From: Thecamonas trahens ATCC 50062
Taxonomy: Eukaryota > Protista > Apusomonadida
DNA length: 6,930 bases
NCBI RefSeq assembly: GCF_000142905.1
Contig: NW_013657579.1
Span: forward strand, 1-6,930
Direction of reading: 5' to 3'
The notes under the pieces were generated by a model. The model was not told the DNA's origin. It saw nothing but the letters and a program-made list of their open reading frames with translations, and ran no database searches. The translations under genes were made by a program, and so were the position numbers. Positions within the stretch are counted from its first letter, which is position 1. The number at the start of each line of letters is the position of its first letter. This document shows positions 1 to 6,930 of this stretch, piece by piece.

Positions 1-210
1 TCGACTCCTTGTAACGAACCGGAATCGTTGGACGATTGCGGGCACGAGAGTTAATCGTTAGTCGATCCTTGTAACGAACCGGAATCGTTGGACGATTGTG
101 GGTACGAGAGTTAATCGTTGGTCGATCCTTGTAACGAACCGGAATCGTTGCACGATTGTGGGTACAAGAGTTAATCGTTGAACGATTAGGGTAACGTTGA
201 GTAATCGTCG
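1..210. repeat. Tandem array of 30-bp monomers arranged as ~3.5 copies of a 60-bp A/B dimer, with a palindrome at each monomer junction
   Basis: 1-60, 61-120 and 121-180 are near-identical (gtcgatccttgtaacgaaccggaatcgttg + gacgattgtgggtacgagagttaatcgttg). 181-210 is a diverged seventh monomer. AATCGT recurs every 30 bp (23, 53, 83, 113, 143, 173, 203). The array is cut by the window edge. Confidence 0.95.
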
Positions 211-313
211 GATGCGAAAGGTGTCCGCAACGGTCCCGAAACAGACCGAGTGTGGCATCGGCATCGTATTCGGCAGGGGAAGATACCTCTCTCCGAGCCA
301 GCAAGCGAGAGGC

Positions 314-1612
314 ATGGCAACGATCACGTCCCTCCCCACAGAACTCATCCATCTCGTGGCGTACACACTCAGAATGCTCTCCGGACGCGATGTGGTCGCC
401 CTCGCCTCGACTTGCACCCGACTCCATACCGCACTCCTCGGCTCACACCATGGTCAGGCACAGGCACGGGCACTCGGCGGATTCGATGTCTGTATGGCGC
501 ATGGATGGTGGCGATCGGCGTGGATAGCCATGATGCGGCAGGCCGAGATCGAGGAGTTCATCGAACTGTGGTTCATCGAGAAGTTGGGCCGGCGATCGTG
601 GTCCAAGTCCCGCATGGAGCGCGTGGCCATGGCCAGAGCCATGGATGACGAGTGGTGGCGGAAGGTGGTGGTGGCGGTCATGAAGAGCCGCGCAGCTATC
701 AAGATCAGGAGGCGACAGACGATCATGGGCTTGCGATGGTTGACGGATGACAGATGGATGGGCATGGGGAGTATCATTGCTCTCGGCGGCGGCGAGGAGA
801 TGGAGGAGCTGGCGCTCGAGCTGGTGGAGCTGGCCGACGACAACGAGAAGACCACCATGCTCATGGCGGCAGCAGTGAAGGGTTTGCCTCGTCTTGTGGA
901 GCGATTGCTGGAGGAGAGCGGCGTGGATGCCGGACCCGATGACGACTTTCCGCTCCGGGTGGCCGTAGCCGCCGGCCGTGCCGACATCGTGGCGCAGCTG
1001 CTGGCCCATCCGTATGTCAATCCGGGGGCAAAGGGCGGCTTTGCCATTCGGACAGCTGTCACCGATGGTCACACTGACATCTTGAAGATGCTCTTGGCGC
1101 ATCCGCGCGTCAGCCCGTCATCCATCTCCGAGACCGAGTTTGCCTTGCTGGCTAGCGAAGGGGACGCCGACACCTTGGCGCTCCTCTTCGCCCATCCGCG
1201 CTTTAGCGTCCGGGCCAGGGACTACGACCTTGCCATCGATTGTGCCATCCGCGAGGGGCACACGCACATTGCCGAGCTGATCGTTGGCAACACATGGGCA
1301 TTCGAGTCCCGGAGCACCAAGAGCACCTTTGCGTGGGCAGCGAGGGAAGGCCACACCGAGATTGTGCAGCAACTGCTTGCGAATCCAGCTGTGGATCCAT
1401 CGACAGACAACAACTACGCGTTGCAAGTGGCGAGCATGGCCGGGCATGCAGAGGTCGTCGCGCTGCTTCTGGCTCATCCGCGCGTCGATCCGTGTGTCAG
1501 CAACAACATCTCTATTCGGTTGGCCGCAAAGAACAGACACGACCACGTCGTTGCCTTGCTCGCAGCCGACCCGCGCGTCGATGCCGCCGCCGCAAGCGGT
1601 CCCGCCCGTTAG
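314..1612 (+). CDS. F-box-like / ankyrin-repeat protein (432 aa)
   Basis: The long ORF 197..1612 begins at a TTG inside the repeat array. The ATG at 314 (ggcATGg, good Kozak-like context) directly precedes LPTELIHLVAYTL...RDVVALASTCTRLHTAL, which resembles an F-box (LPxE start, C at the VC/TC position). The C-terminal half has ~8 ankyrin repeats, e.g. NYALQVASMAGHAEVVALLLAHPRVDP. An in-frame ATG at 212 is a less likely start. Confidence 0.85.
   Translation: MATITSLPTELIHLVAYTLRMLSGRDVVALASTCTRLHTALLGSHHGQAQARALGGFDVCMAHGWWRSAWIAMMRQAEIEEFIELWFIEKLGRRSWSKSRMERVAMARAMDDEWWRKVVVAVMKSRAAIKIRRRQTIMGLRWLTDDRWMGMGSIIALGGGEEMEELALELVELADDNEKTTMLMAAAVKGLPRLVERLLEESGVDAGPDDDFPLRVAVAAGRADIVAQLLAHPYVNPGAKGGFAIRTAVTDGHTDILKMLLAHPRVSPSSISETEFALLASEGDADTLALLFAHPRFSVRARDYDLAIDCAIREGHTHIAELIVGNTWAFESRSTKSTFAWAAREGHTEIVQQLLANPAVDPSTDNNYALQVASMAGHAEVVALLLAHPRVDPCVSNNISIRLAAKNRHDHVVALLAADPRVDAAAASGPAR
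851..1582 (+). repeat. ~8 ankyrin repeats of ~34 aa (GHxxVVxLLLAHPRVDP subtype, no TPLH)
   Basis: Recurring GLPRLVERLL, GRADIVAQLL, GHTDILKMLL, GDADTLALLF, GHTHIAELIV, GHTEIVQQLL, GHAEVVALLL and RHDHVVALLA, mostly followed by HP(R/Y)V, NPAV or DPRV. Confidence 0.9.
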
Positions 1613-1621
1613 CTGCTTTAC

Positions 1622-3151
1622 TTAGGCGCCGCGGTTGATGCCGAGGAGAGGGGATCGCTCCAAGCGCTGGCTGTTGCGACGGCGGCGGATGATAAAGACC
1701 ATGGCGAGCACCAGGCCGCATACGACGACGGCGCCGACTGCGGCGAGAATGATAGGTGTGGGGCTCGGATTGAAGGTAGAGGGTCCCTGTGCCGGCGGGT
1801 GCGGCGACGGCGGCGACGGCGGCGATAGCGGCGACGATGGCGGCGATGGCGGCGATGGCGGTGGCGATGGCGGTGAAGACGATGGCGATGGCGGTGAAGA
1901 CGATGGCGGTGGTGGAGGACAGGCCGGAGCGGGAGGCGACGGCGGAGACACACTGGTGGCAGGGTAGGCCATGACCGCAATGAGACCCATGGCAGCAAGA
2001 TCACGACCAGGCGCAGACGGCGAGTCAAAGAGGTTGGAGACAAGAAGCCGAACCGCGCCAGTCTTGCTTGGGATGGTGGTCCGGTTCCACGCCGCCGATC
2101 CGGTGGGCGTCAGCTGGAAGATCTTGGCCAATGTGTAGGCTGAGATGATGAGCGTGTCGGGCCCGTCTGGGACAAGGGCCGGGACAGTGACCATGTCAGG
2201 CACCTGGCTTCCAATTGTGCCAGGCTCGGCGATGTACTCGCCGACAACAAAGGTCATCGGTGCAGTCTGGACAACGCGGACGACAAAGGCAGTCGGCACG
2301 GACGAGTTTTCAACGGCGACGATGATGTCGGCGCGAGGGCCAGGGAAATGGCCTACGGCAATCGCGGTGACCGTTGCCTCTACCGGGCCTTGGTAGACGA
2401 GGACTGGCGCGTCGAGACCACCGTCAGAGCCCTTGTTGCGAACAAGCCAGACAGCAGGTGATGAAGAGCTGAAGACGAGGACGTCGTCGAGGCCGTCGCC
2501 GTCGACGTCGGCGAGGATCGGCCGGCTCATGCTGGCGTTGGAGAAGACGGGAATGGGCGTCGACAACTCATGCCCGCTGCCATGAGTATTGGCCATCCAC
2601 GCGAGAGTGTCCGGACTGCTCTCTGCCTCGCCTGGCAGTACCATGACCAAGTCCTGCGCAGGATGTGGGGCGGAGATGGCGGTCATGACCAGGGCCGACG
2701 GATGGATACCGGGATAGACCGGCACGAGTGGCTGCGAAAATCCCACGGGGGCGGCCGACATGTTGGCGTACACAAGGCCATCGTCCGCGTTGGCGAGGAC
2801 GATCATGGCGTGTGCATCTGGCCCGACCGCCGAGAGGAGACCAAAGGTGGCGGCCGATGTCTGGTGTGTCAGATCGATGGGATTGACATGCCAGGCCTTC
2901 TTGCCCTGGTTGCCAAGCATGGTAGGACTTGACATGGGCGAAGAAATGAGGATGTCACTGGGCGGCATGGGCTTGGTACTGATCGGAGCTAGAGAGCCAG
3001 CCACAAAGGTAGGCACTCCCGACATGGGAGGCAGGAAGCCAGTAGTGATCTTAATTGGTGCCTCATACACGAGGTGTGCACCTGGACCAAGGCCAACATC
3101 CGCATCAAGTGTAGCGGCAGCAGGGAGGACAAGGGCGAGGAGCAAGGTAGA
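1622..3151 (-). CDS. Single-pass type I membrane protein with FG-GAP/VCBS-like ectodomain (5'-partial; start probably within the N gap)
   Basis: About 509 open codons from the gap edge to TAA at 1624-1622. Signal-peptide-like LLLALVLPAAA at the gap edge. Ca-binding-type ADVDGDGLDDVLV (DVDGDGLDD at 2483-2509) plus degenerate copies (IAVGHFPGPRADIIV, LLVSNLFDSPSAPGRDLAA, PDGPDTLII). Pro/Ser stalk, 22-aa hydrophobic helix (1688-1753), RRRR stop-transfer and a 21-aa tail. Confidence 0.85.
   Translation of the reverse strand, partial: STLLLALVLPAAATLDADVGLGPGAHLVYEAPIKITTGFLPPMSGVPTFVAGSLAPISTKPMPPSDILISSPMSSPTMLGNQGKKAWHVNPIDLTHQTSAATFGLLSAVGPDAHAMIVLANADDGLVYANMSAAPVGFSQPLVPVYPGIHPSALVMTAISAPHPAQDLVMVLPGEAESSPDTLAWMANTHGSGHELSTPIPVFSNASMSRPILADVDGDGLDDVLVFSSSSPAVWLVRNKGSDGGLDAPVLVYQGPVEATVTAIAVGHFPGPRADIIVAVENSSVPTAFVVRVVQTAPMTFVVGEYIAEPGTIGSQVPDMVTVPALVPDGPDTLIISAYTLAKIFQLTPTGSAAWNRTTIPSKTGAVRLLVSNLFDSPSAPGRDLAAMGLIAVMAYPATSVSPPSPPAPACPPPPPSSSPPSPSSSPPSPPPSPPSPPSSPLSPPSPPSPHPPAQGPSTFNPSPTPIILAAVGAVVVCGLVLAMVFIIRRRRNSQRLERSPLLGINRGA
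1790..1950 (-). repeat. Low-complexity Pro/Ser-rich stalk (SPP repeats)
   Basis: ggcgac/ggcgat/ggcggc runs on +. An exact 21-bp duplication, ggcgatggcggtgaagacgat, sits at 1863-1883 and 1884-1904. Translates to PPPPPSSSPPSPSSSPPSPPPSPPSPP on -. Confidence 0.9.
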
Positions 3152-3458
3152 NNNNNNNNNNNNNNNNNNNNNNNNNNNNNNNNNNNNNNNNNNNNNNNNN
3201 NNNNNNNNNNNNNNNNNNNNNNNNNNNNNNNNNNNNNNNNNNNNNNNNNNNNNNNNNNNNNNNNNNNNNNNNNNNNNNNNNNNNNNNNNNNNNNNNNNNN
3301 NNNNNNNNNNNNNNNNNNNNNNNNNNNNNNNNNNNNNNNNNNNNNNNNNNNNNNNNNNNNNNNNNNNNNNNNNNNNNNNNNNNNNNNNNNNNNNNNNNNN
3401 NNNNNNNNNNNNNNNNNNNNNNNNNNNNNNNNNNNNNNNNNNNNNNNNNNNNNNNNNN
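3152..3458. other. Assembly gap (307 N)
   Basis: Run of N. Confidence 1.
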
Positions 3459-3614
3459 GCGTGTACATGAGCGCCGTTCGATAGCTCGCGTACACACGAG
3501 ATCAAGGTAAGAATTGGGCGCTCAGAGGCGCCCGTCGTCGTGTCGTCGTCGTCGCGCATCGTCGATCGGAGAGCCGACCGTGTCGAGGCCATCAGAGCGA
3601 GGTGGCAGCTGCTT

Positions 3615-3626
3615 TGATTCGCTCCG
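3615..3626 (-). promoter_or_regulatory. Candidate core-promoter/5' leader motif CGGAGCGAATCA (copy 1)
   Basis: An exact 12-mer also found at 6901-6912. Both copies lie on - just upstream of an ATG (3592 and 6866). Confidence 0.25.
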
Positions 3627-4222
3627 CTGGCCGTGAGTGTTAGCGACTCGTAGCAGTGGCGGCAATCATGAATAGAGGGAGAAGGCTCTCTAGCTCGGAA
3701 TCAACGAGGCCATGCCATCGATTCTGCGGTGCGATGGCGGTGGGTGCTACACGGATGGGGGCGAGGTCGCCGCGTAGCAAACCACAGGAAGTAGCCCCGT
3801 GTTGGCAGATATATCGGAGAAGTTGTCCATCTGCCCGACGCTCGTGGCGGCAATGAGTCCAAGCACCAACTCGCACCGGCCGAGGGATGTGTGGGTGCAC
3901 TGCCGATGTCGATGAGCTGCATAGCTGCATCAGCCCTCGTGACTGTGGTTTTGCCGGCCGATCAGTGGACCGGATGCTCCAACAACGGCCTTGCTGTGAA
4001 CGCCGGCAGCGTCGTTGTCAGCGGCGGCATCGACGAGATCGTCATCGATGGCGAGCGGCCGGATGAGATTGACGACGAGTCCGCGACCTCTACGCCCGCC
4101 GCGTCGTCTATGTCGTCGTCGCATGGCTGTTGCCTACGGCCCGTGCAACGGCGAGCAGACGAGTCTGGCGGCTACCCTCAGTGAGCTTGCTACTGCGCGA
4201 TCGTCGCGGGGGCGGCCTCGTC

Positions 4223-4916
4223 GCCTTGTGGTGCGAGATGGAGGCAGTGTTGGAGGCTGGCGGGCCGATGGCGCTCAGCGGGTACACGCGGGTGATGGCC
4301 AAGGTCTTGCTGCCACATGTAATCTACGCGCGCATCGACTGTGGGTCGCTGGAGGAGCTCCCTGCCGAGGCCTTTCTCGTGGGCGGCCGCACGATCGGTC
4401 GTTGCAGCGGGAGTAGAAGCGGGCTGGCCGGGCTCGGACGCCGCTGTTAGCTGAGCTCGGGCTCGGGCCTCGACCGCGTGTGGGCGCTGAGCATCGAGCT
4501 GGCGCTGGCGCGTGCGCTCGCCGAGGTCCACTCGATCACGGGTGGCGGGCACGACGTGGTGGTGGACCACAAGAGCGGACGGATGGTCATCAAGAGCAAC
4601 TAGGGGACGATGGCGGTGGTGCCATCGGTGGCGTACATGGCGCCGGAGCAGCTGCGCGGAGCCGATGAGGGTTTGAGGGCGACATGTTCACCTTTGGCAC
4701 GCTCCTCTACGAGATGCTCATGCGGGCGCCGGCGTTTGATGGCAGCAATGCCATGGGGGTCGGCCGTCAGGTCCTCACCAGCAACGCTGCTAGTGCGATG
4801 GCGGGTGATTCATCCGGCGGTGTTGGTCGGTCGATCCGCTGGTGAGGCCCATGGCGCAGGAGGCTGCAGATGTGCTGGCGGCAGCGAGGATGCGGACGCG
4901 GTGCTGGGGGGAGTAA
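4223..4916 (+). pseudogene. Decayed eukaryotic protein kinase domain (TKL/TK-like)
   Basis: Kinase subdomains occur in the correct order across three frames. Frame 2: ALWCEMEAV (III-like, 4223), HVIYARIDCGSLEEL (V, GSLEEL at 4343-4360), WALSIELALARALAEVHS (VIa), SVAYMAPEQLRG (VIII, YMAPE at 4634-4648). Frame 1: DMFTFGTLLYEML...PAFDG (IX, from 4681). Frame 3: FIRRCWSVDPLVRPMAQEAADVL (XI, CW..DP..RP at 4821-4850), ending in TAA at 4914-4916. There are in-frame TAG stops at 4448 and 4601, frameshifts near 4670 and 4809, and no intact HRD or DFG. The 5' boundary is uncertain. Confidence 0.85.
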
Positions 4917-4928
4917 AGGCGGTGGGTG

Positions 4929-6866
4929 TTATGGGTGGCGGCGGAGGATGATGGGGGGGCGGTTGGAGAATACGGTGAGGAGGCGGTTGGGGTCGGAGGG
5001 GTGGGGGATGGAGAGGCCGGTGTGGTTGGCAATGGTGATGCGAGTGGAGTTGTTGCGTGGGTGGGTGGAGGTGGAGCGGCGGGCGTGGAGCCAGAAGGAG
5101 GAGGGGTGGCGGGCGTGGAGGGCGTAGCCGGTGGGGGAGGGGTGCCACTCGAACGTCTCGTCGGAATCTGAGTGGGAGGCCAGGACGGGCAGCTGGCCAT
5201 CCGCACTCGGCAGCGCAATCACACCCCGCACACTGTAGGTGTGGCCCTCCAGCACCTCACAGGAGGCATTGTCCGCGGTGTACCGCATGGCACCCATCTC
5301 GTCGTCCGCAGCATGCCACACCCGGATCGTGTCTTCCCACGACCACGAGACCAGGACAGGCAGCTGGCCATCCGCACTCGGCAGCGCAATCACACCATGC
5401 ACATCGTCGGTGTGGCCCTCCAGCACCTCACAGGAGGCACTGTCCGCGGTGTACCGCATGGCGCCCATCCCGTCGTCCGCAGCATGCCACACCCGGATCG
5501 TCCTGTCCCGCGACCACGAGACCAGGACCGGCAGCTGGCCATCTGTACTCGGCAGCGCAATCACACCCTCCACACCGCTGGTGTGGCCCTCCAGCACCTC
5601 ACAGGAGTCCCTGTCCGCGGTGTACCGCATGGCGCCCGTCCCGTCGTCCGCAGCATGCCACACCCGGATCGTACTGTCCCACGACCACGAGACCAGGACA
5701 GGCAGCTGGCCATCCGCACTCGGCAGCGCAATCACACCCTCCACATCGTCGGTGTGGCTCTCCAGCACCTCACAGGAGGCACTGTCCGCGGTGTACCGCA
5801 TGGCGCCCGTCCCGTCGTACGCAGCATGCCACACCCGGATCGTGTTGTCTCTCGACCACGAGACCAGGACCGGCAGCTGGCCATCCGCACTCGGCAGNNN
5901 NNNNNNNNNNNNNNNNNNNNNNNNNNNNNNNNNNNNNNNNNNNNNNNNNNNNNNNNNNNNNNNNNNNNNNNNNNNNNNNNNNNNNNNNNNNNNNNNNNNN
6001 NNNNNNNNNNNNNNNNNNNNNNNNNNNNNNNNNNNNNNNNNNNNNNNNNNNNNNNNNNNNNNNNNNNNNNNNNNNNNNNNNNNNNNNNNNNNNNNNNNNN
6101 NNNNNNNNNNNNNNNNNNAGGCAATGTCCGCGGTGTACCGCATGGCGCCCGTCCCGTTGTCGGCAGCATGCCACACCCGGATCGTGTCTTCCCACGACCA
6201 CGAGACCAGGACAGGCAGCTGGCCATGCGCACTCGGCAGCGCAATCACACCCCGCACATACTTGGTGTGGCCCTCCAGTACCTCACAGGAGGCACTGTCC
6301 GCGGTGTATCGCATGGCGCCCATCCCGTCGTCCGCAGCATGCCACACCCGGATCGTCCTGTCCCGCGACCACGAGACCAGGACAGGCAGCTGGCCATCCG
6401 CACTCGGCAGCGCAATCACACCCCGCACATCGCTGGTGTGGCCCTCCAGCACCTCCACGCGTTCACCAGTTTGCACGTCAAGTACGTCCACATTCTTCCC
6501 ACATCCAGCAGCAACCAGCGAGCCACCGATGTTGATGACATTGCCGGACAAGCCATCAAAGCGAAAGCGCTCAGCACCACGATGCGCGACAGGGTCCACG
6601 ACTCTCAATGGAATGAGAGCCCCAGACGGGGCATCTTTGCTCACAGCAGCAACCAGGTCCTTCACGGCGTTGGACGCGTTGTCATAGGCAAGTCGGGCAA
6701 CGAGCTCGGTTTCGATGTGTGACGTACCGCTCTCAATGATCTCGCGTGAGAGCGACAGCGCATGCTCGACCTGGTCAACGTCTTTGGCTCCTTCACGGCC
6801 GAGGCGCACAACACAACGCAGATCGTTGAGGAGGCCACCAAGCGAGTCGTTTGCGCGGGCATTCAT
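4929..6866 (-). CDS. WD40-repeat protein with highly internally conserved 57-aa repeats and a ~100-aa, probably helical, N-terminal region
   Basis: 645-aa ORF, in frame across the gap. Repeats read EVLEGHTxxVxGVIALPSADGQLPVLVSWSxxxTIRVWH..., matching the WD40 GH...S.D.TIRVW signature. A degenerate blade (SLVAAGCGKNVDVLDVQTGERV) precedes them. No Walker A/NACHT motif is visible. Confidence 0.9.
   Translation of the reverse strand: MNARANDSLGGLLNDLRCVVRLGREGAKDVDQVEHALSLSREIIESGTSHIETELVARLAYDNASNAVKDLVAAVSKDAPSGALIPLRVVDPVAHRGAERFRFDGLSGNVINIGGSLVAAGCGKNVDVLDVQTGERVEVLEGHTSDVRGVIALPSADGQLPVLVSWSRDRTIRVWHAADDGMGAMRYTADSASCEVLEGHTKYVRGVIALPSAHGQLPVLVSWSWEDTIRVWHAADNGTGAMRYTADIAXXXXXXXXXXXXXXXXXXXXXXXXXXXXXXXXXXXXXXXXXXXXXXXXXXXXXXXXXXXXXXXXXXXXXXXXXXLPSADGQLPVLVSWSRDNTIRVWHAAYDGTGAMRYTADSASCEVLESHTDDVEGVIALPSADGQLPVLVSWSWDSTIRVWHAADDGTGAMRYTADRDSCEVLEGHTSGVEGVIALPSTDGQLPVLVSWSRDRTIRVWHAADDGMGAMRYTADSASCEVLEGHTDDVHGVIALPSADGQLPVLVSWSWEDTIRVWHAADDEMGAMRYTADNASCEVLEGHTYSVRGVIALPSADGQLPVLASHSDSDETFEWHPSPTGYALHARHPSSFWLHARRSTSTHPRNNSTRITIANHTGLSIPHPSDPNRLLTVFSNRPPIILRRHP
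5180..6455 (-). repeat. Coding tandem repeat, 171-bp unit, ~7.5 copies (one hidden in the gap)
   Basis: The anchor ggcagctggccat occurs at 5188, 5359, 5530, 5701, 5872, 6214 and 6385. Spacing is 171 throughout and 342 (2 x 171) across the gap. Confidence 0.97.
5898..6118. other. Assembly gap (221 N) inside the WD40 repeat array
   Basis: Run of N. Its length keeps the 171-bp register exactly. Confidence 1.
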
Positions 6867-6900
6867 CCACGGCCAGGAGAGAGCAACGGCAACGGCGGCA

Positions 6901-6912
6901 TGATTCGCTCCG
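6901..6912 (-). promoter_or_regulatory. Candidate core-promoter/5' leader motif CGGAGCGAATCA (copy 2)
   Basis: Identical to 3615-3626 and 34 bp upstream of the WD40 ATG at 6866. Confidence 0.25.
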
Positions 6913-6930
6913 GCTGCAATCAGGTGCGAA

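Follow-up and report, generated by a model that had tools for sequence, protein, structure and literature searches.

Why would a gene keep many copies of one protein module almost identical in DNA, yet let the same few codons differ from copy to copy? The question is raised by the minus strand of a 6,930-nucleotide stretch of the genome of Thecamonas trahens ATCC 50062 (hereafter the window, C101:1-6930; the contig C101 measures 8,762 bp), which carries an array of WD40 repeats of 57 amino acids each. The answer we favour, at a probability of about 0.78, is that the WD40 propeller forms the ligand-sensing end of a TIR-NB-ARC-WD40 receptor of the NOD-like (NLR) or STAND type, the scaffolds of its repeats being homogenised and five codons per repeat being under diversifying selection. 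An earlier reading of this DNA, made from its letters without database searches (the sequence-only reading), had placed the gene in a probably non-fungal microbial eukaryote. In agreement with this, the sources name the paralogues as proteins of T. trahens, an apusomonad, under generic annotations, among them 'WD repeat protein', 'ribosome assembly protein 4' or 'NB-ARC domain-containing protein'.

The units follow one another over positions 5088-6455, in the minus-strand translation, in an exact 171-bp register, counted here from the E of EVLEGHT; Tandem Repeats Finder reports a period of 171 with 91-92% matches, and the WD40 domain (PF00400) exceeds its Pfam cut-off in the window translation. 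A WD40 unit normally comprises some 40-44 residues that fold into a four-stranded blade and bear a GH...WD-type signature. The unit described here likewise makes a four-strand blade, but it is 57 residues long, ends in WH rather than WD and contains an added hairpin. Near-identical units with changes clustered at two spots had been described by the sequence-only reading, and every motif that it quoted is indeed found: GHT is followed by SD-V-R, KY-V-R, DD-V-E, SG-V-E, DD-V-H and YS-V-R, and SWS by RDR, WED, RDN, WDS, RDR and WED. Codons 8, 9, 11, 31 and 33 comprise 15 bases, of which 13 vary among the units of the window, as against 17 of the 156 bases elsewhere (Fisher p=9.5e-10), and the pairwise nucleotide difference amounts to 0.467 in these five codons and 0.045 outside them. 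The milder variation that had been noticed in the insert loop is also present, at positions 40, 45 and 53-56. An assembly gap of 221 N interrupts the array. The unit starts on either side of it are separated by exactly 4 x 171 nt and the gap length equals 50+171, so that frame and repeat phase are both preserved. Taken as written, this length gives a blade count of eight; any true length of 50+171k would be equally in register, so the real number of units is not fixed by the stated 221 N, and continuity of the frame is plausible whatever that number may be. Long plus-strand open reading frames (ORFs) over the repeats, of 482-516 aa, are taken to be by-products of the GC-rich repeats, the Pfam WD40 signal lying on the minus strand.

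What precedes the propeller? A single frame is open on the minus strand from 4932, next to a stop codon at 4929-4931, to the right edge of the window; it meets no stop between an ATG at 6866 and that edge and is open to base 6929. From base 6931 onward follows a run of 1,207 N, beyond which the same frame encodes a TIR domain, partial in this contig and scoring 27.9 bits for Pfam TIR_2 (cut-off 28). Window positions 6456-6930 have counterparts of 91-95% identity at about 14 other loci, and the gapless paralogues among them (C59, C64 and C22; 95% identical) encode proteins of 1,415-1,622 aa composed of TIR_2, NB-ARC and 8-13 WD40 units. For C59 and C64, Pfam gives 37 bits for TIR_2 (cut-off 28) and 52-54 bits for NB-ARC (cut-off 23.5), and WD40 lies past its cut-off as well. 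The NB-ARC segment that C59 has between the counterparts of the two gap flanks of C101 measures 404 aa (1,212 nt), a size in keeping with the 1,207 N. The 'short N-terminal region, no NOD' of the sequence-only reading is thereby contradicted: the nucleotide-binding domain (NOD) appears to be absent because of the window edge and the assembly gap, and the short region is therefore a linker behind the NOD and not an N-terminal effector. The open frame and the TIR domain beyond the gap also dispose of the ATG at 6866 as a start codon (it is an internal methionine), of a putative upstream ORF, and of a short architecture lacking a NOD.

In the paralogues the NB-ARC motifs are intact. Their NB-ARC aligns with that of the plant proteins NRC1 and NRC2 in the PDB (E=2e-8) over the P-loop, the Walker B motif, an hhhDDxW motif and a GLPL-like motif. 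Their TIR domain aligns with a bacterial TIR (PDB 4lzp) and has a glutamate at the W+4 position, which is where TIR NAD hydrolases (NADases) carry their catalytic glutamate. Pfam finds no HET domain, TIR_2 taking its place, and no NACHT match in C59 or C64, where NB-ARC is found instead. A second N-terminal type occurs in C22 (L011), C97 (L017) and C125 (L027), with a different TIR-like sequence and an extra segment of ~60 aa; as both types sit on the same NB-ARC-WD40 body, the family shuffles its N-terminal modules. On the minus strand of C70:107000-114015 (L014), the frame of ORF 3-5567 stays open past the WD array and encodes another NB-ARC, another TIR_2 and an nSTAND3 domain, and the public model AMSG_11190 of this locus has 2,359 aa, which suggests a tandem cluster or a fusion of NLR-like genes at the end of that scaffold.

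Do the five codons vary by more than drift would allow? From 19 loci, a profile of the window units retrieved 122 complete in-frame 57-codon units, 114 of them unique in DNA. Among these 114, by a tree-free count, non-synonymous diversity (πN) at positions 8, 9, 11, 31 and 33 is 0.50, 0.59, 0.61, 0.63 and 0.51, the global values being 0.11 for synonymous diversity (πS) and 0.98 for πN/πS. Between 8 and 14 amino acids occur at each of the five positions; the intervening positions 10 and 32 are conserved, as is the loop stretch PSADGQLP. The five codons have a nucleotide diversity of 0.53, as against 0.069 for the rest of the unit and 0.087 for third positions outside them. We further fitted codon models with our own grid likelihood of the MG94 type, on a fixed IQ-TREE topology with a single overall branch-length scale and grid-optimised mixture parameters. 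The M2a-type model (lnL -4381.3) is preferred over the nearly neutral M1a-type model (lnL -4517.6) by a 2ΔlnL≈273 (2 degrees of freedom), these likelihoods being approximations because the implementation is our own and grid-fitted. Its class with a non-synonymous to synonymous rate ratio (ω) of ≈4.5 (p=0.08) contains exactly sites 8, 9, 11, 31 and 33, each with a posterior of 1.0, sites 54 and 40 being weaker. When the synonymous rate (α) may differ from site to site, sites 9 (p=1e-8), 40 (p=1e-5) and 11 (p=0.0025) stay significant. Variation in excess of the neutral expectation is thus borne out by the diversities and by the model comparison alike, whereas the more specific forecast of ω>1 at all five positions fares unevenly, since the M2a-type fit singles out precisely these sites and the site-specific rates retain only 9 and 11. 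Single-step codon models route multi-base changes via synonymous steps, and long-lived selected alleles, too, raise the apparent α.

Where on the propeller would these residues lie? We modelled the WD region of C64 (538 aa) with AlphaFold2 from an eight-row alignment of paralogues (predicted local distance difference test 77.8, predicted TM-score 0.79). Each unit is modelled with strand D at CEVLE, strand A at V10-L16, strand B at V25-S30 and strand C at T34-W38, and the insert of the 57-residue unit folds into an extra hairpin of A40-D42 and M48-Y50 (model residues 78-80 and 86-88). The D-A loop contains positions 8 and 9; strand A, which begins with V10, has position 11 as its second residue, and the Asp of the B-C turn stands between positions 31 and 33. 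In the standard definition, the D-A and B-C loops make up the top face of a WD40 propeller, and the five sites match the positions known as interaction hot spots of this fold. The model thus predicts all five on the top, ligand-binding face. The single face that the sequence-only reading had anticipated is supported in so far as all five sites belong to the top face by strand topology. The C-D insert, located on the other side or the rim, holds the more weakly variable sites 40 and 53-56. The best PDB match of the model is 2ymu, the WD40 propeller from Nostoc described as 'a highly repetitive propeller structure', which shares with the Thecamonas protein its near-identical repeats. In the C59 (L016) and C64 (L010) arrays, the length of the B-C turn varies as well (SWSRDNNT and SWSGGFRNTDNT in place of SWSxDxT), and one unit in these arrays lacks two residues after RVW.

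The scaffolds around the five codons behave quite differently. With these codons left out, the distance between units is 0.059 within a gene and 0.063 between genes. Between paralogues, NB-ARC distances range over 0.023-0.163 and WD scaffold distances over 0.041-0.099, the two being uncoupled (r=-0.25): C59 and C70 differ by 0.129 in NB-ARC and by 0.046 in the WD scaffold, C22 and C59 by 0.023 and 0.077. Concerted evolution of the repeats thus extends over the family. An older paralogue, C17, stands outside the exchange pool with a WD scaffold distance of 0.18; this divergent copy (C17:1-10000, L019) has 62% protein identity and could be used as an outgroup to date the homogenisation. Once C17 is excluded, 119 units from 17 gene copies display 102 distinct five-residue signatures, and 33 pairs of units differ at no more than 2 of 156 scaffold bases, yet at 2-5 of the hypervariable residues. 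Residues are strongly associated inside each loop cluster (8-9, z=12; 31-33, z=7.4), and the two clusters, 60 nt apart, are nearly independent of each other. From an evolutionary point of view, the units therefore behave as mix-and-match pairs of loop cassettes on a homogenised frame.

Members or fragments of the family are found on ~18 scaffolds, the paralogues being 87-98% identical, and each of the 15 copies on large scaffolds is no more than ~17 kb from a scaffold end, with its 5' end pointing outward. C67 has (CCCTAA)n at 18-477 and a family copy at ~10.2-16.4 kb. As a telomere adjoins the C67 copy only, a subtelomeric position is established for this copy, and we infer that the others at scaffold ends are probably subtelomeric too. 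Scaffolds C1 and C2 begin with telomeres, and no family match was reported on either. C101 itself is a mosaic. C71 matches it at 98-99% identity in the far flanks and the TIR, and C97 at 98.3% in the last four units, the tail and the region downstream. Over the beginning of the array and the linker preceding it (6119-6930), identity to C97 is only ~93%, and elsewhere in the array identity to C97 or C71 is ~92-94%. The contig is co-linear with the terminal ~11.6 kb of C71 (flanks 98-99% identical), and a 60-bp sequence stands in three tandem copies (95% identity) at window positions 1-180, an array that recurs at C71:11399-11697. C97 and C101, like C73 and C123, have identical units in common, and each pair may represent redundant contigs.

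Several observations weigh against the receptor reading. The NB-ARC segment of the window's own copy falls within the size-matched 1,207-N gap. Compared with C59, C64 and C71, this copy is moreover short of one A in TCCAACGAC (L009:3690-3863 = C101:8589-8762, minus strand), a one-base deletion that shifts the frame 13 codons into the TIR domain, after YDVFLCHGS; the contig ends short of the start codon, and the copy may be a pseudogene, or the deletion a read error at the contig edge. With regard to selection, sites 8 and 33 have a non-synonymous rate above α without significance and site 31 has a high α too, so that a locally raised mutation rate is conceivable; codon models also assume one tree, and the units clearly recombine, which inflates such tests. 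On the structural side, the top-face assignment is a matter of strand topology rather than geometry, and sites 40, 54 and 55 are variable away from that face. Finally, telomere repeats were found, among all fetched loci, only at the start of C67.

How might such a receptor work? We envision that exchange within and between the ~18 copies would keep the 171-bp scaffolds nearly identical, while diversifying selection would drive the five codons of each unit apart. With the variable loops on the top face, the pair of loop cassettes would change from blade to blade and the recognition surface from array to array. If Apaf-1, plant TIR-NB-ARC-leucine-rich-repeat proteins (TNLs) and HET-E are taken as guides, a variable ligand, derived from a pathogen or from a conspecific, might bind the propeller and release the NB-ARC switch; this could lead to oligomerisation and thereby to a cluster of TIR domains, which would then signal, probably as NADases by cleaving NAD+, to bring about cell death or defence. 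The sequences themselves show the domain order, the family of copies, the homogenised scaffolds and the surplus of non-synonymous change; what the receptor binds, whether it serves immunity or allorecognition and what its TIR does are the parts of this scheme that we infer by analogy. Ordinary mutation and selection together with exchange are preferred here over targeted diversification. A bolder version, which we regard as unlikely but worth stating, holds that frequent ectopic exchange of 171-bp units and loop cassettes among the ~18 chromosome-end copies creates new recognition surfaces rapidly, possibly within clonal lineages, which would amount to an anticipatory immune repertoire of the contingency-locus type.

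Could the same pattern arise otherwise? The five codons might be mutational or short-tract gene-conversion hot spots, targeted or programmed and aided by ectopic recombination at chromosome ends. Synonymous diversity is indeed raised at codons 8, 11 and 31 (πS 0.31-0.74 versus 0.11), units with near-identical scaffolds differ at up to five hypervariable residues, the residues are tightly linked in each loop cluster and near-independent between clusters 60 nt apart, and C101 joins C71-like to C97-like segments. At sites 9 and 33, however, synonymous diversity is at background level, and multi-step codon paths and long-lived selected alleles would also raise the apparent πS. The same pattern in fungi has been explained by selection and concerted evolution (PMC1805685). 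The changes cover all bases and all codon positions, unlike the adenine-specific mutagenesis of diversity-generating retroelements, and Pfam found no reverse transcriptase or template repeat in four translations from the window and C101 (a genome-wide search for either was not made), so that a mechanism of this retroelement type is provisionally rejected. Taken together, we consider targeted diversification improbable, more so than the contingency repertoire. Mere neutral drift of recently amplified repeats at unconstrained surface loops would account for a young family, with paralogues 87-98% identical, and for variable sites that the AlphaFold2 model places in loops; it is nevertheless very improbable, given that non-synonymous diversity at the five sites is ~5x the synonymous and ~6x the third-position diversity, that the M2a-type model improves on M1a by the margin given above, and that other loop residues (PSADGQLP) are conserved. 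Hardly any weight can be attached to an assembly artefact, in which collapsed or mis-joined near-identical repeats would have created the differences between units. Several N gaps do lie inside arrays, and the units shared by C97/C101 and C73/C123 perhaps betray redundant contigs, but errors would not hit the same five codons in 119 units of 17 gene copies with the frame intact, and identical hypervariable combinations recur on independent contigs. Mis-assembly could alter the order or number of units, not their content.

A different kind of alternative accepts the molecule and changes its job: rather than sensing pathogens, the family might serve conspecific non-self recognition, that is allorecognition at cell fusion, or act as a selfish or incompatibility element. 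Against this proposal, neither somatic fusion nor incompatibility is known to us from Thecamonas, and plant and bacterial TIR-NB-ARC proteins are for the most part pathogen sensors. On the other hand, the only relatives by mechanism with a defined function, HET-D, HET-E and HET-R, are allorecognition genes (PMC1805685), and the family shows high polymorphism, lies near chromosome ends and is lineage-specific, in that a word-based search found it in T. trahens only. We consider this alternative unlikely, to much the same degree as the contingency repertoire.

The preferred reading, a diversified NLR-type receptor, has its nearest counterpart in fungi. In Podospora, the HNWD/NWD proteins (HET-NACHT-WD or NACHT-WD) have near-identical WD repeats that evolve in concert across 10 paralogues, and their codons 7, 9, 25 and 27, on the interaction surface to either side of the conserved codons 8 and 26, are under strong positive selection (PMC1805685). 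The HET-E/HNWD-like pattern put forward by the sequence-only reading is recovered in Thecamonas, with homogenised scaffolds and selection at codons that flank a conserved Val and a conserved Asp: positions 9 and 11 surround V10, 31 and 33 surround D32, and site 8 is an extra selected site. Both are STAND/NLR proteins with a C-terminal array of near-identical WD40 repeats, concerted across ~10-20 paralogues. The parts differ, in that the NOD of Thecamonas is NB-ARC and not NACHT, its N-terminus is TIR_2 and not HET, its unit has 57 aa with a beta-hairpin after strand C where that of Podospora has 42 aa, and it belongs to an apusomonad with copies at scaffold ends. The family thus works like HNWD without being a member of it. 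To our knowledge, repeat-induced point mutation has not been described in apusomonads. The HET domain is remotely TIR-like (PMC4986451). Fungal NLRs in general are enriched in highly conserved, positively selected ANK, TPR and WD repeats (Dyrka et al. 2014; PMC4986451), and the Thecamonas family likewise is composed of NLRs with superstructure-forming, internally conserved and positively selected repeats. This survey, devoted to fungi, puts the share of such repeats among plant and metazoan proteins in general at a very low 0.4% and 0.8% (PMC4986451).

Outside fungi, similarities concern single parts. With plant TNLs the family shares the order of TIR and NB-ARC, NB-ARC motifs that align with NRC1/2 and a catalytic-type Glu in the TIR, but its sensor is a WD40 propeller and not a leucine-rich repeat, and the similarity is remote. 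In Apaf-1, a long WD40 array behind the NB-ARC binds the activating ligand, and proteins of this Apaf-1/CED-4 type served as the model for the mechanism proposed above; Apaf-1, however, has a CARD, is single-copy, and consists of divergent, non-homogenised blades without hypervariability. Among bacterial STAND proteins and related systems, the TIR of Thecamonas resembles ThsB and retron TIRs, but the family consists of eukaryotic nuclear genes, for which the word-based search yielded no close bacterial relative. NB-ARC-TPR candidate receptors of Ectocarpus, a eukaryote that is neither fungus, plant nor animal, are proposed to diversify (cited in PMC4053784). They differ from the Thecamonas family in their TPR repeats and in lacking TIR and WD40. 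TPR repeats of Ectocarpus are shuffled as exons. A word-based search with the TIR-NB-ARC part found no relatives outside T. trahens, and in the open-access literature no paper linked Thecamonas to NB-ARC, NLR or TIR proteins beyond an unrelated mention.

The layout of the gene within the window is compiled in the table. The C-terminal tail may partly be 3' untranslated region or intron, because the public model of the C59 paralogue splices inside the last blade.

Table. Parts of the TIR-NB-ARC-WD40 gene in the window (positions in the window; N, undetermined bases).
Feature	Position	Strand	Remarks
3' two-thirds of TIR-NB-ARC-WD40 gene	4932..6930	-	91-95% DNA identity to ~14 paralogues
Helical linker, after NB-ARC in paralogues	6567..6930	-	Matching sequence ~690 residues into full-length paralogue proteins
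Degenerate first blade (FRFDG...GERV)	6456..6566	-	AlphaFold2: four beta strands (E10-41) ahead of first regular unit
WD40 unit 1	6285..6455	-	Hypervariable codons 8-11 at 6423-6434 (SDVR), 31-33 at 6357-6365 (RDR)
WD40 unit 2	6114..6284	-	Hypervariable codons at 6252-6263 (KYVR), 6186-6194 (WED); last two codons in gap
WD40 unit 3	5943-6113	-	All N
WD40 unit 4	5772-5942	-	First 15 codons N; visible 5772..5897; codons 31-33 at 5844-5852 (RDN)
WD40 unit 5	5601..5771	-	Hypervariable codons at 5739-5750 (DDVE), 5673-5681 (WDS)
WD40 unit 6	5430..5600	-	Hypervariable codons at 5568-5579 (SGVE), 5502-5510 (RDR)
WD40 unit 7	5259..5429	-	Hypervariable codons at 5397-5408 (DDVH), 5331-5339 (WED)
Terminal, divergent blade (YSVR ... 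SHSDSDETFEWH)	5133..5258	-	
Low-complexity C-terminal tail	4932..5132	-	73-98% DNA identity among paralogues
Assembly gap, 221 N	5898..6118	.	Hides end of unit 2, unit 3, first 15 codons of unit 4

The neighbourhood of the gene contains further coding sequence. An ankyrin-repeat protein (Pfam Ank_2, 1e-31) is encoded at 314-1609 on the plus strand, and by eye its N-terminus bears an F-box-like LPTELI...V motif. The product of 1625-3592 on the minus strand combines FG-GAP repeats with a Pro/Ser-rich stalk (PPSPPSPP) and, judged by eye, a C-terminal hydrophobic stretch resembling a membrane anchor; a gap of 307 N at 3152-3458 breaks this gene. A kinase pseudogene at ~4480-4950 on the plus strand, considered on account of motifs seen by eye (MAPEQL..., FGTLLYEML), is unsupported, as Pfam found nothing in three ORF pieces; this stretch is part of the block that is 98.3% identical to C97. 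Next to the C64 copy, a plus-strand ORF (L010:53-2437) shows long Ser-rich tracts and, by eye, a Cys pattern at its N-terminus that resembles the fungal-type Zn2Cys6 motif.

What, then, does the locus tell us about the evolution of such receptors? That homogenised repeats can be combined with hypervariable codons on a binding face is already established for fungal NLRs. Thecamonas arrives at the same evolutionary pattern from different parts, namely TIR, NB-ARC and a 57-aa WD40 unit, and does so outside fungi, animals and plants, with its copies at scaffold ends, a location that can be expected to facilitate ectopic recombination. This points either to a convergent reinvention or to an old eukaryotic way of making variable intracellular receptors. 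ATCC 50062 offers a culturable system for asking what the NLRs of protists recognise, and a contingency-locus repertoire, if true, would mean anticipatory immunity in a free-living protist, from a lineage that is sister to Opisthokonta.

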